Shown: positions 2,710-64,000 of the stretch, one piece after another
How the letters are laid out: each line of letters begins with the position of its first letter
Numbering within the stretch: the first letter of the stretch is position 1
Assembly (NCBI GenBank): GCA_002104945.1
Contig: MCFH01000050.1
Location: 345,027-409,026, forward strand
DNA: 64,000 bases
Direction: 5' to 3'
Origin: Piromyces finnis finn
Taxonomy: Eukaryota; Fungi; Neocallimastigomycota
Position numbers and translations under genes: made by a program
Notes under the pieces: model-generated
Databases searched by the model: none
What the model saw: only the letters and a program-made list of their open reading frames with translations
Told to the model about the DNA's origin: nothing

Positions 2710-5140
2710 ATGATGACTGCTGGTAGTGTTGGTAGTAGAAGTGCTGGTAAATAATCAAATTTATATATATATACCAATGAAATAATAGAATTTAAAGAGG
2801 AAAAGTATAAAAGCTAATGGGTATTTTTCTTTTAAAAAAAATAACTATAATTATAACCATACATAATAAACATTTATAGCAACCAAACGTTTAATGAAGG
2901 AATATGCTGAACTTCAAAGTTCTCCAAATTTTCAATACTCAGCTGCTCCACTTGAAGTACATATAAAAGAAAAAGAAAATATGTCTTGTTCAAATATTTT
3001 ATTTTAAAAATTGAATGTTAATAAAATTTATTATTTGGAAATTGTTATTAATAAATAGGATAACATTTTTGATTGGCATTTTACCATCAGAGGTCCACAA
3101 GATTCAGAATTTGAAAATGGAATGTATGTAATTCTAATCAAACGATATATATATATAAACAAAAAAAGTTAAATTTTACAACAACATCAATAATTAAATT
3201 GTAACATTAATATAAAATATATATTATATATAACATTTATATATTTTAAAGATATCATGGTCGTATTGTATTACCACCACAATATCCATATAAACCACCA
3301 AGTATTTATTTCTTAACTGTAAGCTTAGAAATAAGATAATCATTATTATAAAGAATATAGGGTAAAATAAAATTAATAAATTTAAATATATTATTATTAT
3401 TAAAATTATTTAAATAAAACCATAGCCAAATGGTCGTTTTGAACTCGGAAAAAAAATTTGCTTAAGTATTACTGGATATCATCCAGAAACTTGGTTACCA
3501 GCTTGGGGAAGTAAGTAATTTATGTATTTTAGATAATAATTAATTTTATATTTCAATTTATATTATATTTTAAAAAAATAATTATAAAAAGCATTCAAAA
3601 GATAGAAAAAATAAAAAGGATGTTTTAATTATTGTTTAAATAATTAAAGCATTTAATAGAATTATTAAATAAATTAAACAATTAAAATTTATAAAATAAT
3701 AATAATAGTATGTATAAAAAGGAAAAAAACAAAAATTTTTTTTTTCTTTTTATATTTATTATTATTATTTAATTTAAAATGGGTAATTTGAGTTGAAAAT
3801 AAATAAAAAAAGAAACTAGATAAAGGAAAATCTTAAAAAAAAAAAGATTTTTAAGAAAGAATTTTTATTTAAAAATTTGATAAAGTAAATGTGAAATAAT
3901 ATTAAAATACATGAAAGCTACATGAAAATTATACGTTGATTTTTTTAATTTTAGTTTGTGTATATTAATGATAGGAAATATATTAAATATAAGAATTATC
4001 AAAAAATCTTAATTATTATTTTACTGATAATAATTTATACTCTGATAAAATTAATTATATTTATTTCTATTTACTAAAAATTTTTTAAATTTATTTTTGT
4101 ATATTAAAATTTGCATTATTAAATTTTAAAATACTATAGTTAGAACAGCTTTAATTGCTTTAATTAGTTTTATGACAACTGAAGGAAAATCAGCTGTTGG
4201 TGCTTTGGATTATACACCAGAAGAAAGAAAAGTAATTATTATTTATAATCACTTCTAGTTTTCATAATAATATTATTTGTTTGTTTATCATAAACTAATA
4301 TTTAATAATCTAAATTTACCACCTTACCTCTCATTTTTTTAATTATTAATAATCAATAAATAAAATTAACAGATTCTTGCTAAAAAGTAAGTAATATTAA
4401 TATGTTAATAAAACAACAATTGATTATTAACAATTGTTTACTTTTATAATTAAATAAAAAGATCTCAAACATGGTATTGTGAAAGATGTGGATGCAAAAA
4501 TTGTGAACAAGTATTACCAATTCCACAGAATGAAACCGAAAATCATGAAGATCATGAAGATCATGATAAATTAGCTGATATGTTGGTTGTTTATGGTGAT
4601 AAAAAAGAAAATGTTGAATCAGAAAGTCAAAAAGATACCACAATTCAAACTGATGTAAATAATACTTTACCTATATCAAACAACTCAGAAAATGAAAATA
4701 ATAATAGTATAGAACCAACAGAATCGCCATTAAATAATATAACAATAACACCAACACCAACCACCACACAACCATCTACTAATATTAATACAAATAATGT
4801 AGAAATAAACTCTTCATCTGTACAGCAAAGAGTACCAACTTCATCTACTTCTGTAAATGTAGAGCCTGTAGAACAAACCGCAACACCAGCATCAGCATCA
4901 TCTTCATCTTCTTCTAATCAACCAACAACTATACCAACAACAAATAGTTCACCATCTACATCCACTACAAATAATATTAATAGAACTAATTCCCAAGTCA
5001 ATATGAATCAAAATAATATTAATGAAGAAAGGTTCAAATCTTTCATTGATACCTTGATTATTGTTGTTTTTGGTCTTCTTGCAGCATTAGTTTATTATAG
5101 AATTAATAAAGATGCAAAGTTTTGGAATAATTTAGAATAA
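2710..5140 (+). CDS. UBC6: Ubiquitin-conjugating enzyme E2, Ubc6/UBE2J1 type (ER tail-anchored), about 8 exons
   Basis: GT-AG exons join to MMTAGSVGSRSAATKRLMKEYAELQ..SAAPLE|DNIFDWHFTIRGPQDSEFENG..YHGRIVLPPQYPYKPPSIYFLT|PNGRFELGKKICLSITGYHPETWLPAWG|IRTALIALISFMTTEGKSAVGALDYTPEERK. The active-site Cys is in KICLS. A Ser/Thr/Asn linker and C-terminal TM helix (TLIIVVFGLLAALVYY) follow, with the stop at 5140. Confidence 0.93.
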
Positions 5141-5869
5141 TAAAAATGATAATTTTAATTAAAAGAAGCATCGTATAAAACACTTAAAAACACAAAATAA
5201 TAATTTAATAACAAAAAGAAAAAAAAAATCAAAGCAAAAAAAAAATCATTTGTATAATATTCTATATAGTATATATTAAAAAAAAAAAAAAAAAAACATT
5301 ATTAAATAATATCTATTTTTAAATCTATTTCATTTTCAATATTTTAAAGTAAATTTTCATCATTATTTTTAATAATATATCACAATATCAGCAATTCAAC
5401 AATGTAACAATATCAAATTCATTAATCCATTTAAACTATTGTTTTTACATATATAAGAAAAAAAAAAAAAAAAATTATAAAAATCGTAAAATCAAAATAC
5501 AAATCTAAAAAAAAAAAAAAGAAAGAAAGGAAAAATAGTAATAATAAAAAAAGTTTAAACGAAATCATTATAACGTATAAACTAAAATACTTTAAAGCAA
5601 CAACTACAAAAATAATAATAAAATAAATATATATATATAAATAATATCTTCTTAACTATTTTAAAAATCATTATTAAAAAATATGTGTATCTTTTTTTTC
5701 TTTAAATAAAAAAATAAATATTATGCCTATAAATATTAATTGTTAGATATGAATTAGGCATATTTTTTTTTTTTTTTATATTATAAAAGATTTAAAAAAT
5801 TATTATTATTAATTATCCATTGAAGTTAAAAATGATTATTTTATAAAGTCATTTGTTGATTTTCTTTGT

Positions 5870-58596: not shown

Positions 58597-59613
58597 ATGG
58601 TATGTAGAATAAAGGATAATAATATGAAGTATTTCATATTGATTAAATGGATGAATAATATTTAATTTAAAATGAATACTACTTTAAATTTTATTATCCT
58701 AGAATGTTTTTTTCATTAAGAGCATTCAATGACCCATATATAAATTTTTAAGAATTTTTAATGCCTTATTCCATTATCTCATAGAATTTTGTAAATTTTT
58801 TTTATGCATAAAATGTTTAATTTAATTATATAGCCAAGAGCTCAAAAGTCTAAAAAGGTTGCCCCAGCCCCATTACCATTCAAGAAGGCTTCTACCAAGG
58901 CCCCAAAGAACCCACTTACTGAAAAGACTCCAAAGAACTTTGGTATTGGTCAAGATGTTCTTCCAAAGAGAGACCTTTCTCGTTTCGTCAAATGGCCAGA
59001 ATACATCCGTCTTCAACGCCAAAAGGTCGTTCTTCAACAACGTCTTAAGGTTCCACCAGCTATTAACCAATTCAACAATGTCTTAGACAAGAACACTGCT
59101 ACTCAAGTTTTCAAGCTTCTTAACAAGTACAGACCAGAAAACAAGAAGGAAAAGAAGGAACGTCTTGCTGCTATCGCCAGCTCTGCTGCTGAAGGTAACA
59201 AGGTTGACCAAGGTAAGAAGCCAGTCGTTGTCAAGTACGGTATCAACCACATCACCGCTTTAGTTGAAGCCAAGAAGGCTCAACTTGTTGTTATTGCTGA
59301 TGATGTCGACCCAATCGAAATCGTCCTCTGGCTCCCAGCCCTCTGCAAGAAGATGGGTGTTCCATACTGTATTGTTAAGGGTAAGGCTAGACTCGGTACC
59401 GTTGTCCACAAGAAGACTGCTACCGCTCTTGCCATCACTGAAGTTAGCGCTGAAGACAAGGCTCAACTTTCTTCCCTTGTTTCCACTATCAAGTCTGGTT
59501 TCATGGTTAAGGCCGAAGAAGAACACAAGCACTGGGGTGGTGGTATCATGGGTGCCAAGACTCTTAACATGTTAGCTAAGAGAGAAGCTGCCCGCGCTAA
59601 GGATTTAAAGTAA
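58597..59613 (+). CDS. RPL8: 60S ribosomal protein eL8 (L7a/L8); ATG-only exon 1, intron 58600-58833
   Basis: M|[94 protein letters not shown]. Codon bias is that of a highly expressed gene. Confidence 0.98.
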
Positions 59614-59994
59614 ATGTGATTAACACATTGTAAAAAGAATTTTTGTATCTGTTCAAAAATTTAATAAAATCATATAAAATATAAAATTTATTAAAACTCG
59701 CATTATCTTTTTAAGTAATTTAATAGTGTACATTTAGAATTATACCACATAGAAGACTTTTTTTATATTTTAGGAAATATATATCTTTTTCATATTTATA
59801 ATTATTATAACTATTTTTTTATTATAATTTATTATTAAATAAAATAAATTTAAAAATTAAATTAAATTGTGTTTAAAAATTGTTGTGTTTAGAAGTGAAT
59901 TATTTGTGAAGAAAGGATGCTAAATTTAATATCCTTTTTAATTTCTTTTAATAATAACAATAGTAGTAATAGAAATAATAATATTAGTAATGAT

Positions 59995-60399
59995 AAATCA
60001 TGCCTTTTGCTATCTAACCAAAATCATGCCTTTTGCTATTGGCCAGCAATGGTCAATGTTCAAAAGGTTTGAAGCAACATCCAAGAGCGTCAATGCTGAA
60101 GAAACAGTAAGACAGGCCAGGAGGGCCAGCGCAACCAATGGAGATCATAATTTTGTTCCATGACAAAATTTTGATCTTTGGCTCGGTGTCCCATTGGAAG
60201 TCAAATACAATTATTATACTTTAGTATGATAGTGGCTTTCTTACTTTAATTAAAATTACTAGAATACATTATACCCAATTTTTATTCATTTGTGTTTATT
60301 TAAACATATTTTTTTTATTTTTATTTTTATTTTTAATTTTTTATTACATGTATTATAATTTTAATTAAATTAATAATAAAGTTTAAAATATTTGATGCC

Positions 60400-60442
<43 letters not shown>
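59995..60442 (+). mobile_element. 5'-truncated LINE 3' end: last codons of ORF, 3' UTR and A40 tail
   Basis: YLTKIMPFAIGQQWSMFKRFEATSKSVNAEETVRQARRASATNGDHNFVP* (stop 60161-60163), then a UTR and poly(A) at 60403-60442. A 19-bp segment at 59995-60013 duplicates 60021-60039. Confidence 0.75.
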
Positions 60443-60443
<1 letters not shown>

Positions 60444-60444
<1 letters not shown>

Positions 60445-60678
60445 AAATTTTGATCTTTGGCTCGGTGTCCCATTGGAAGTCAAATACAATTATTATACTT
60501 TAGTATGATAGTGGCTTTCTTACTTTAATTAAAATTACTAGAATACATTATACCCAATTTTTATTCATTTGTGTTTATTTAAACATATTTTTTTTTATTT
60601 TTATTTTATTTTAATTTTTATATTACATGTATTATAATTTTAATTAAATTAATAATAAAGTTTAAAATATTTGATGCC

Positions 60679-60737
<59 letters not shown>
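60444..60737 (+). mobile_element. Second LINE 3'-UTR copy with A56 tail
   Basis: Near-identical to 60165-60442, with small differences in the T-rich tract. Confidence 0.85.
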
Positions 60738-60739
<2 letters not shown>

Positions 60740-60775
60740 CCTTTTGCTATTGGCCAGCAATGGTCAATGTTCAAA
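60737..60775 (+). repeat. 39-bp copy of the LINE ORF C-terminal segment
   Basis: Identical to 60026-60064. Confidence 0.9.
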
Positions 60776-61130
60776 CCCTCTTGGGAACGTGCCTTCATTT
60801 ATTTAATAAATGTAGTTTCTCAAGGGGGTCTACTCATGCTCATGGTACTGAGAGAGTAGAAAGACTCCCTCTTGGGAACGTGCCTTCATTTATTTAATAA
60901 ATGTAGTTTCTCAAGGGGGTCTACTATATGAAGAGTCATAATCCTAAGAAGGCCTGGAAATGGATCAAGAAAACTGCAAAAATTGGAAAAGATTCTTTCT
61001 TTATTGCCCTCTTGGGAACGTGCCTTCATTTATTTAATAAATGTAGTTTCTCAAGGGGGTCTACTCATGCTCATGGTACTGAGAGAGTAGAAAGAATTAA
61101 ATCCAAGTATTGCGCAATGGATGCTTGGTG
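60776..61130 (+). repeat. Three truncated copies of the LINE 5' end (60776-60864, 60867-60925, 61007-61129) with an ORF-derived insert (60925-61007)
   Basis: Each copy begins CCCTCTTGGGAACGTGCCTTC. The insert equals 63729-63811. Confidence 0.95.
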
Positions 61131-64000
61131 CCCTCTTAGGAATGTGCCTTCATTTATTTAATAAATGTAATTTCTCAAGGGGGTCTACTCATGCTCATGG
61201 TACTGAGAGAGTAGAAATAATTAAATCCAAGCATTGCGCAATGGATGCTTGGTTAGTCTTCAAGGGAAAATTATTAGGACTAAGCTCATGGTACTGAGCG
61301 ATTAAAAAACATTTTATTCATCAAATTTAAGTATTTGATGAATAAGTGAATGTTTGATTTTTCAGGTAAGTTTGTATAGTATTTAATTAGAAGAGTAATA
61401 CATTTTGTTGCTGTATTTTTTTCTTTTATTCATGTATTCATGTAGTACTACTCTTCTCTTGTAAGAATCCAATGTAGTCAACTTTAGCATTTGCATTGTA
61501 TTTTTATATTCATGTAGCTATTGTTGTATTGTTTCTTGTAAGAGACTGATTCACTCTACATCATGTAAAAATACTATTCACAAGCTTTCTGGTGTCGACA
61601 TTCTTGATTCAAATTTTTTACCAATTTAAATATTTAATGAAAAGTAAAGTCAAACAAGTTTAGTGTCAAAAAGCGAATCGAATTTACTAACAACAAACCA
61701 AAATTAGAATTTTTAAAGAAAATTTACAACTAGAATTCAAAAAAAAGAAACTTTAAACAAAGCATCGTAACAATTTTTGTACTATCCAGTACTTTTAAGA
61801 AGAGAGAGAGAGACAGATTTTTTTCCATATACGTTATATTTGTAATTTTTATTAGTATTTATTTTATATTCAATATTTTTTAATTAGAATTTATTATCAT
61901 GTCAGTCCTTTATATTAAAGATAAGAATTATATCAGACGTGGTACCCGGTCTTATGGTATCCCCTTAGATGATATTCGCTCCTTCTTTATCCGTGGTATT
62001 CGATCATGGTCAGTAAATATGCTATGGGAAAAACTCGAGGTTATTCTAGAAGATAAATTTAATTCAGTTATTAGTGTTAAATATTTTCAAACTTTCAATG
62101 ATCACTTTTTCTTAGTCAAGGTTCATGGTTCATCAAAAGATTGTATTAAAATCTTACACATGTTAAAGAAGAAACTTTCAGTTACCTCAATTTCCTTTTC
62201 AGCTCGTAGTAGAAGGAATCACAAATACACTTTTTCCACTCTCAAACGTAAAATTTTAGTTTCTAATAAACATCAACATTCTATTCAACATTCATTTCAA
62301 CAATCAGTTCAACAATCTCATCAACAATCCGATCTTCAACAAGATCTTCAACAAGATCTTCAACAAGTTTCCCATCATGAAAATATTCCAGATCTACAGC
62401 AAACACAATTTCAATCTCAACATTCAACAATTAATTCTAATAGTTCTATCAACTCTGATAACAGTTCAATAGTTGATAGTTCTTCAGTTTCACAGCCATC
62501 TAGTAATAGTTCTACTTATTCCTCTGATGCATCATCCATTAATAACGATGACTTTAATAATAATAATAATAATAGCAACGATTCTTCCTCATCCAACAAG
62601 CCTGATAACTTTTCTTTTTGTCTTAGTTGGAACACCAATGGGTGGAATCATGAAAAGAGAGATAGTATTAGCTATTTCACAGCTATTTTCAAACCATTAT
62701 TCTTATGTTTCCAAGAAACTGGTAATGGTTCTGGTTCGAATACAGATTATCCTTGTCGTGTTACTTTGCGAAACTATAGACACTTTTTCAAGAAAGCTGA
62801 CGAATCAGTTCCAGGAATGAGAGGTTTATATTTAGGTTTTCACAATTCGTGTCAAGCCTCACTTGAAAACTTCTCTGGAAAGTATATTATTTCTATTTAT
62901 ACTTTTAGTCTTTGGAATAGATTCAAATGCTCGATTGGAAATGTTTATATGCCTCATAGTCATCACAACATCTATGTTGATCATGCAAAGTTAGAAGTTC
63001 GCTTGTGGTTACAAACTCATTCATCCCATCCATCGATTCTTGTTGGTGATTTTAATATGTCTAAAGTAAAATTATCCAACTGGTTATCAACTAATGGATT
63101 AGGAGATTGGGAAATTCTTCCGCTTAGAGGGTCGACTATCTCTTGGACTCGAGGTGATCAATCTTCCGACATTGACCATGCTCTTATCAATTCGAAGATG
63201 AAAGATCTTATTCACTCAGGATCATTTATAAATAATTTTTATCCTGTATCAGACCATAAGCCACTTCTTATTAATGGTAAAATTATTCCTATGGAAGATT
63301 TTTCTAATGACTTTAATGTTCCTAAGAAAATTCTGAAATGGAATAGATTAAAATGTATTGAGGAAAAGGAATCTATTCTCAGTCATAATAAATTCCAAAT
63401 ACTTTCAGCAAAATTCAACGATCCTAATGTTTCTACAGATGAACTTTCCAAAGAGTTTACTTCAACTGCTTTTTCAATTGCAGACGAGCTCAGTATTACC
63501 TCAGCAAATAATGTTATAAAGTCTTCATTTCATATTTCACAACAAATTTTTAATCTCCAAAAAATCAAAATGAAGTTGTATAAGAGATTTAAAAAAGAAA
63601 GAATTTATGATATAGATGAATTTATTAAAAGAATTAAAATCTACCGTAAGCTCATTGATTACATCCACAAAAGATGTAATGAATTTAGGAAGCAAGAATA
63701 TCTTCATTGGATTAAAACAGGATGTGAGTATATGAAGAGTCATAATCCTAAGAAGGCCTGGAAATGGATCAAGAAAACTGCAAAAATTGGAAAAGATTCT
63801 TTCTTTATTGCTCAACCAATTAAAAACAAAAATGGAGAATTAGTTGTTGCTACGGAAGAACAACTAGATGTGTGGCATGATCATTTCGAAAAGCTTGCAT
63901 CAGATCCAAGTGGTGTAAGTCTTGATTTGGAGCATTGGTATGAAGAACCAACGAATAAACGTTTTTCACTCCCTATGCTTGATGAATGGGATATCAACCA
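61131..64000 (+). mobile_element. APE-type non-LTR retrotransposon (LINE), 5' portion, apparently intact; continues past the window
   Basis: Structured 5' UTR at 61131-61898 followed by an uninterrupted ORF carrying the endonuclease. Confidence 0.92.
61899..64000 (+). CDS. LINE polyprotein (partial): N-terminal alpha/beta domain, Q/S/N linker, AP endonuclease, pre-RT region
   Basis: No stop in 700 codons; it is missed by the ORF track because it runs off the window. All APE motifs are present: SWNTNG, LCFQET, NVYMP, ILVGDFN, SDIDHAL, VSDHKPL. They are followed by KKAWKWIK and WHDHFEKL, typical of the pre-RT linker. Confidence 0.92.
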   Translation, partial: MSVLYIKDKNYIRRGTRSYGIPLDDIRSFFIRGIRSWSVNMLWEKLEVILEDKFNSVISVKYFQTFNDHFFLVKVHGSSKDCIKILHMLKKKLSVTSISFSARSRRNHKYTFSTLKRKILVSNKHQHSIQHSFQQSVQQSHQQSDLQQDLQQDLQQVSHHENIPDLQQTQFQSQHSTINSNSSINSDNSSIVDSSSVSQPSSNSSTYSSDASSINNDDFNNNNNNSNDSSSSNKPDNFSFCLSWNTNGWNHEKRDSISYFTAIFKPLFLCFQETGNGSGSNTDYPCRVTLRNYRHFFKKADESVPGMRGLYLGFHNSCQASLENFSGKYIISIYTFSLWNRFKCSIGNVYMPHSHHNIYVDHAKLEVRLWLQTHSSHPSILVGDFNMSKVKLSNWLSTNGLGDWEILPLRGSTISWTRGDQSSDIDHALINSKMKDLIHSGSFINNFYPVSDHKPLLINGKIIPMEDFSNDFNVPKKILKWNRLKCIEEKESILSHNKFQILSAKFNDPNVSTDELSKEFTSTAFSIADELSITSANNVIKSSFHISQQIFNLQKIKMKLYKRFKKERIYDIDEFIKRIKIYRKLIDYIHKRCNEFRKQEYLHWIKTGCEYMKSHNPKKAWKWIKKTAKIGKDSFFIAQPIKNKNGELVVATEEQLDVWHDHFEKLASDPSGVSLDLEHWYEEPTNKRFSLPMLDEWDIN

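Follow-up and report, generated by a model that had tools for sequence, protein, structure and literature searches.

A mosaic of same-family fragments at the 5′ end of a LINE in Piromyces finnis and its probable origin by serial template switching

The end of contig MCFH01000050.1 in the genome assembly of the anaerobic gut fungus Piromyces finnis (GCA_002104945.1) carries a long interspersed nuclear element (LINE) whose 5′ end is preceded by a stack of fragments from its own family. The window analyzed here is the whole 64,000-nt stretch at positions 345,027 to 409,026 of this contig, and coordinates given without a locus label are those of the window. At 59995–61130, eight pieces of one LINE family, 19–429 nt in length, lie on the + strand, as do all the window features described below, and the element itself begins at 61131. 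There are 8 internal junctions and one junction with the genome. This anatomy had been described in an earlier note on the letters alone, and it is confirmed almost base for base, with every piece found in its place and all in one orientation.

The mosaic follows an AT-rich genomic flank without family homology (59980–59994). Its leftmost piece is a 19-nt ‘stutter’ (59995–60013) that repeats sequence from the end of the open reading frame (ORF) at 60021–60039, with a repeat spacing of 26 nt. The re-copy is exact. The 7 nt separating the two 19-mers (CTAACCA) is not filler. It is genuine ORF sequence that aligns to the same codons in relatives, and therefore the leftmost piece is a 19-nt re-copy joined to the next piece through an overlap of up to ~4 nt (CTAT). 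That next piece, 3′ unit A (60014–60442), consists of at least the last 150 nt of the ORF, with the stop codon ending at 60163, a 239-nt 3′ untranslated region (UTR), and A40. An extra T (60443) stands between A40 and 3′ unit B (60444–60737), which starts at about the third base of the 3′ UTR and ends in A56 (98% over 284 nt, E 1e-136). A 38-nt ORF-end piece at 60738–60775 is identical to 60027–60064 and is essentially the ORF-end hairpin described below. It is followed by nt 1–89 of the element with a CT filler (60776–60866; nt 1–89 at 60776–60864 and CT at 60865–60866), nt 1–59 (60867–60925), an 83-nt ORF-interior piece sharing 1 nt with each neighbor (60925–61007), and nt 1–123 with an extra G (61007–61130; nt 1–123 at 61007–61129 and G at 61130).

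Adjoining pieces thus overlap by 0–1 nt (up to ~4 nt at the stutter) or are separated by 1–2 extra bases. The pieces are matched with E-values from 1e-14 to 1e-136, excluding chance matches, and zero further matches to the LINE family were found in the remaining ~60 kb of the window. Unit A, unit B, and the 38-mer are identical save for indels in T runs. The 83-nt piece is 100% identical to 63729–63811 (E 9e-38), a segment of the adjacent element’s own ORF 2.8 kb away. On the other hand, the three 5′ pieces are identical to one another where they overlap, while the adjacent element differs from them at 5 of 123 positions, which argues that they came from another RNA and not from local DNA duplication.

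The element starts with a 768-nt 5′ UTR (61131–61898), complete at its 5′ end. Three pieces sharing one start base define its 5′ terminus, and so does the homologous terminus of relatives, which has a C run and a G run. ORF codons 1–700 (61899–64000) run without a stop and free of frameshifts over 2.1 kb, encoding an N-terminal domain, an endonuclease of the apurinic/apyrimidinic endonuclease (APE) type (PF03372 at aa 242–453), and a linker. Window position 64000 is contig position 409026, the final base of the contig, and the break falls inside the LINE ORF before the reverse transcriptase (RT) domain. As the RT and the 3′ end fall outside the contig, the element can be called full-length at its 5′ end only. 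A break at such a place suggests that the locus holds further copies or a larger LINE cluster.

The probable make-up of the rest of the element was predicted from relatives, here labeled by locus (L) and protein (P) numbers. P0324 (1460 aa) is encoded on metagenome contig L003; its aa 171–628 match the window ORF colinearly at 51% identity, and it contains PF03372 followed by PF00078 (RT, aa 704–957) in a single ORF. The ORF end of unit A (59990–60160) aligns to P0324 aa 1409–1459 with 47% identity (E 4e-9), ending at the stop codon. In L057, from a cluster ~76% identical in the APE region, the APE domain, the RT, the ORF end, and a 3′ UTR homologous to 60023–60417 follow in this order. A 3′-end profile of the family detects both 3′ units of the window (nhmmer, E 3e-66 for unit A). 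The earlier note had assigned the 3′ pieces to the family of the adjacent element although its 3′ end is out of view, and this assignment is supported at the sequence level by the C-terminal alignment to P0324 and by L057, where ORF and 3′ UTR are colinear. The solved RT closest to that of the family is human L1 ORF2p (E 2e-34, vs 5e-19 for R2). The element belongs to the APE-type LINEs; it comes from anaerobic gut fungi, has a poly(A) tail, and uses a single ORF, predicted to be ~1460 aa long in this family.

Relatives of the window ORF are rumen and fecal metagenome fragments and one protein of Anaeromyces robustus. Poly(A) is present as A58 in L025, as A34 in L029, and as ~A60 with one interruption in L037. 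L057 is flanked by a perfect 15-bp target site duplication (TSD), TTTAGAAATTCTATA, flush to both ends (L057:710–724 and 4302–4316). No TSD was found when L025, L034, and L037 were searched, leaving L057 as the only copy with a clear one. Motifs similar to the L057 TSD, GAATTCTATA / TATAGAATTC, occur in the 3′ flank of L037 (near 5563–5575) and in the 5′ flank of L025 (near 1104–1113), and they could reflect a preference for such targets or have arisen by chance where DNA is AT-rich.

An exact-match scan of JGI metagenomes with a 5′ motif of the subfamily gave 0 matches. In both JGI and ENA data, the same decayed copies, 5′-truncated or riddled with stops, recur with the same flanks across many separate gut metagenome samples (L004–L012, L047–L056, L057–L066). 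They look like old insertions fixed in widespread fungal strains. Overall, this is apparently an undescribed and young LINE family of Neocallimastigomycota, with conserved RNA hairpins at the 5′ end and the ORF end. From the base composition (13–32% GC in the window), a tRNA-targeted LINE of the dictyostelid TRE5/TRE3 type, which inserts at a fixed distance from a tRNA gene, was also considered, but this was ruled out because the window has no tRNA gene over its whole length and all protein matches are to anaerobic fungi. Rfam families were scanned for across the whole window as well, and none matched.

Upstream of the mosaic lies the gene for ribosomal protein L7a/eL8, rpl7a (58834–59613; main exon, 259 codons), whose product P0300 (260 aa) is 100% identical to the window translation. 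The LINE stack occupies the 3′ flank of this gene. As rpl7a ends 380 bp before the mosaic, this is the 3′ flank of a presumably highly expressed gene.

The boundaries of several pieces lie near predicted RNA structures. The first 122 nt of the element (61131–61252) are predicted to form three hairpins at nt 1–53, 54–85, and 97–122 (z = −4.7), and the same layout is predicted in four relatives (L003:31–170, L025:1127–1266, L001:8427–8560, and L037:345–484). The family 5′ terminus is always a C run pairing with a downstream G run, so that nt 1 is paired in the first hairpin. Three of the five changes between the two 5′ forms (G8A, C13U, and G40A) shift the register of the first hairpin in predicted folds while pairing is kept. 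Because the first hairpin stays paired despite the changes, the two forms look like distinct live variants rather than one form and its decayed copy. On the right, the 5′ pieces stop at nt 59, 89, and 123, which is 6, 4, and 1 nt past predicted hairpins, respectively.

The ORF-end hairpin (60024–60072) keeps 5 of 12 consensus pairs through two-sided changes in an alignment of 11 sequences. It is followed by a nucleotide block (60089–60135; GTCAATGCTGA...CAGTAAGACAGGCCAG...) conserved far above the rest of the ORF. The hairpin and the block may form a cis-acting RNA element, to which the RT could bind, for instance. At the 5′ base of this hairpin, four left ends fall within ~26 nt of one another, namely those of unit A, the stutter, the 38-mer, and a fragment that arose independently in L029. 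In addition, part of the hairpin-2 region is present as an older duplicate within the canonical 5′ UTR (61165–61235 vs 61250–61325), with a 15-nt exact core, GCTCATGGTACTGAG, and similar flanks. This may be the trace of an earlier re-copying event that is now part of the element.

Twelve distinct 5′ ends of the family were seen, the window included. Same-family sequence on the same strand lies directly upstream in four of them: the window, L001 (a 121-nt fragment of ORF end and 3′ UTR), L003 (at least 30 nt of 3′ UTR), and L046 (an ORF fragment). The upstream fragments in L001 and L003 contain neither a 3′ terminus nor oligo(A). Five of the twelve join AT-rich genomic DNA cleanly (L004, L008, L013, L018, and L033), and those of L025, L034, and L037 are probably clean as well.

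Non-colinear junctions on the same strand were seen in eight relatives (L001, L003, L013, L027, L029, L030, L034, and L046), and an opposite-strand neighbor only in L044. In L013, 5′ UTR nt 1–181 is fused to ORF aa 305 (L013:1771–1949 joined to 1933 onward). In L029, a full element with A34 is followed by an ORF-end fragment (L029:4747–4888), and a comparable same-strand arrangement, in which no poly(A) is clear, occurs in L034. Other junctions, tandem 3′ fragments among them, lie at L027:1766–2200, L046:274–726, and L030:4600–4842. The two sides of the relatives’ junctions have no common k-mer, which makes misjoins in the assembly graph unlikely. A common hotspot in the 3′ UTR was considered for the L001, L003, and L030 junctions and dropped, as their positions map at least 50 nt apart. 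Thus the family forms composites often, and none of them nears the eight junctions of the window.

One of these relatives, L001:8306–10563 (A. robustus MCFG01000096.1), is internally deleted, passing from ORF aa 1–267 through ~70 nt of unrelated sequence to aa 1364 and on to the end. The 121-nt fragment at its 5′ end belongs to a different subfamily, and gene model P0018 was called across the locus.

We consider it moderately probable that the mosaic was generated by RNA-templated serial template switching during target-primed reverse transcription, with six to eight switches. First, the RT would have copied a full-length RNA to its 5′ end. Second, instead of finishing, it would have switched repeatedly to other RNAs of the same family, namely 5′-terminal fragments of a second variant (nt 1–123, 1–59, and 1–89), two short ORF fragments and, if these were part of the same event, two polyadenylated 3′ ends. 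Third, 19 nt would have been re-copied before the cDNA was joined to the genome. All pieces would have come from one event, and RNA fragments whose free 3′ ends lay just past the leader hairpins would have served as acceptors. Should a single insertion account for the whole stack, the flank at 59980–59994 is the predicted upstream TSD copy, its 15-bp length being borrowed from L057.

Template switching explains the short pieces, their single orientation, the run-offs at nt 1 with 0–2 extra bases, and the entries at poly(A). The full element and three of the pieces, four units in all, start at nt 1, which is the family 5′ terminus in relatives with clean genomic junctions. Such a start is meaningful for an RNA but not for DNA, and together with the long pure poly(A) on two units it argues for RNA templates and against DNA rearrangement. 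Two of the four run-offs at nt 1 are followed by extra bases, and non-templated addition at end-to-end jumps is as described for the RTs of retrotransposons without long terminal repeats (non-LTR) (PMC8857657, PMC8594491). Serial jumping by these RTs in vitro is documented (PMC8594491, PMC8857657), as are tandem 3′-to-5′ transgene junctions made by R2 in cells (PMC11371274) and bi- and tripartite LINE chimeras in a fungus (PMC2104539). Of the acceptor starts, two of eight are at poly(A), three are 1–6 nt past predicted hairpins, and three are internal without an obvious landmark.

Several points weigh against this account. The earlier note had seen a possible record of about nine jumps; there are 8 internal junctions plus the genome junction, and jumping is the best reading for the six junctions without poly(A), but a single event for the whole stack is only presumed, as the contig ends at 64000 before any 3′ end or TSD. 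Units A and B, with their poly(A), have exactly the look of ordinary 5′-truncated copies inserted into poly(A) tails. With intact RNAs as acceptors, entry would be internal instead of end-to-end, and acceptor fragments with their ends at nt 59, 89, and 123 are hypothetical. The match between 5′ pieces and hairpin boundaries is post hoc and concerns predicted folds, and the boundary rule fails for the right ends of the 83-nt, 38-nt, and 19-nt pieces. Protein-cluster look-ups returned metagenome fragments only, without a further copy from a sequenced genome. Finally, the structure was read from the assembly.

It is possible, though on balance unlikely, that separate events built the stack. Unit A with the stutter would have come first, unit B would have inserted in or next to the tail of A, and a chimeric full-length copy would have inserted into the tail of B, confining template switching to the last event and the stutter. 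Units A and B could equally be such earlier 5′-truncated insertions into each other’s tails. The tandem in L029, where A34 precedes the ORF-end fragment, supports this order of events, and the adjacency in L034 is similar although it lacks a clear poly(A). R1 tandems, complete units separated by a 14-bp TSD, form when a new copy inserts into the TSD of one already resident (PMC2718515). The mosaic resembles R1 arrays as head-to-tail LINE copies at one site but differs in having no TSD spacer between its pieces. Moreover, as units A and B and the 38-mer are identical save for T-run indels and both tails are long and pure, the separate events must have been nearly simultaneous and must have hit the same few bases.

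Serial template switching might also be carried a step further, and here we give only a small chance to the following proposal. An unusually jump-prone RT would use decay fragments of its own RNA, trimmed to the three leader hairpins and the ORF-end hairpin, as acceptors. In that case, the mosaic would preserve in fossil form the RNA fragments in the ribonucleoprotein and would show the birth of repeated 5′ promoter modules, as in monomer arrays, and of new 5′ UTR sequence, with the 5′ UTR duplication as an earlier, inherited round.

Purely serial nesting is improbable. Here each copy would have entered the first 19–123 nt of its predecessor, always in one orientation, and what is left of the older copies would lie downstream, past the end of the contig. 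Locally, this would give the same picture, including the starts at nt 1 and the small fillers, and an assembly break inside an element is what a large nest would be expected to cause. Nevertheless, four or five successive hits in one orientation would be needed, each within 19–123 nt of the previous 5′ junction of a ~5.4-kb element. The probability is ~4e-9 with uniform sites by our own arithmetic from the piece lengths, making repeated insertion at the element’s own 5′ end, one of the routes offered in the earlier note, improbable on that assumption, and the insertion points have no common target motif. Among relatives, L001 and L046 could be nested insertions. On the L001 downstream flank, alignment with the 3′ UTR is marginal (score 134, against a mean of 107 and a maximum of 134 for shuffles), the family 3′ profile finds nothing, and no flush TSD fitting any hypothesis was found.

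DNA-level rearrangement after insertion is very improbable, whether by microhomology-mediated replication template switching, unequal exchange, or hairpin-induced slippage. The 5′ leader is rich in hairpins, and the 83-nt piece is identical to an ORF segment of the adjacent element. Yet RNA nt 1 is the exact site of three breakpoints, long poly(A) tails are present on two units, all pieces keep a single orientation, and the five differences from the adjacent element mean that the 5′ pieces were not copied from their neighbor.

An artifact of assembly or consensus at the contig end has an equally slight chance. The mosaic is 2.9–4 kb from the end of a contig that terminates in a repeat, and units A and B differ in their T runs, as is typical where PacBio data have homopolymer errors. 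The source assembly, however, was made from PacBio data only, with fragments of >10 kb, using Falcon, FinisherSC, and Quiver (PMC5622200). The mosaic spans 1.1 kb, is anchored in unique DNA, and starts 380 bp from rpl7a; the downstream ORF is free of frameshifts for 2.1 kb, and sequencing chimeras do not yield ordered same-strand pieces of 19–123 nt that start at element nt 1.

Least credible is a functional scheme that would make the stacked 3′ ends or 5′ modules a regular part of the life cycle, acting as promoter or buffer. Such a role had been raised in the earlier note by analogy with the Drosophila telomeric element HeT-A, whose 5′ tags arise from transcription starting in the upstream neighbor of a telomeric array. 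Sequence from 3′ ends with oligo(A) does lie upstream of the element 5′ end as in HeT-A, 3′-derived fragments also directly precede the 5′ end in L001 and L003, and the canonical 5′ UTR holds its older partial duplication. The scheme fails, however, on several counts. At least five relatives have clean 5′ ends without tags, with three more probable cases, and neither a 3′ terminus nor oligo(A) is present in the fragments of L001 and L003. The direct neighbors of nt 1 are 5′ pieces, where a HeT-A-like tag would be an oligo(A)-bearing 3′ end. The pieces vary irregularly in length, and ORF fragments interrupt them. In telomeric addition, poly(A) ends would face the centromere-proximal DNA, but the orientation is the opposite, with unique genes at left and each poly(A) on the right-hand side of its unit. 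The monomers of mouse L1 are regular, inherited units with promoter activity. As in their arrays, a 5′-terminal module is tandemly repeated ahead of the ORF, whereas the window units are 89, 59, and 123 nt long, have an ORF piece between them, and occur at one locus only.

Returning to serial template switching, the closest likenesses are with chimeras made by LINE machinery. Mammalian LINE-mediated chimeric retrocopies include U6-L1 and other bipartite and tripartite chimeras. Like the mosaic, LINE chimeric retrocopies are same-strand fusions of retro-copied RNAs 5′ of a LINE copy, with little or no homology at the junctions and an expected 3′ poly(A). On the other hand, the window has eight junctions where published cases have one or two, and its pieces all derive from the element’s own family, including 5′-terminal fragments, rather than from cellular RNAs. 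The WEIRD/Mg-SINE/MGL chimeras of Magnaporthe were made by RT template switching, and a TSD flanks the whole chimera (PMC2104539). End-to-end jumping by R2 and other non-LTR RTs offers another parallel, in which run-off at a 5′ end is followed by a few non-templated bases and by resumption at the 3′ end of another RNA, as two window acceptors begin at poly(A). The window family differs in that its RT belongs to an APE-type element and is closest to L1 ORF2p, that six acceptor entries are off known RNA 3′ ends, and that its jumping is predicted from sequence.

Serial template jumping and multipartite LINE chimeras have already been documented (PMC2104539, PMC8594491, PMC11371274). The mechanism is thus known, and the locus does not open a new class of mechanism; so many hops at one place are unusual, making it an extreme example. 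It also documents an uncharacterized LINE family. The piece boundaries give rise to a testable idea, that RNA ends just past stable hairpins serve as acceptors. Six to eight switches at one locus would show serial jumping in a living cell on the element’s own RNAs.

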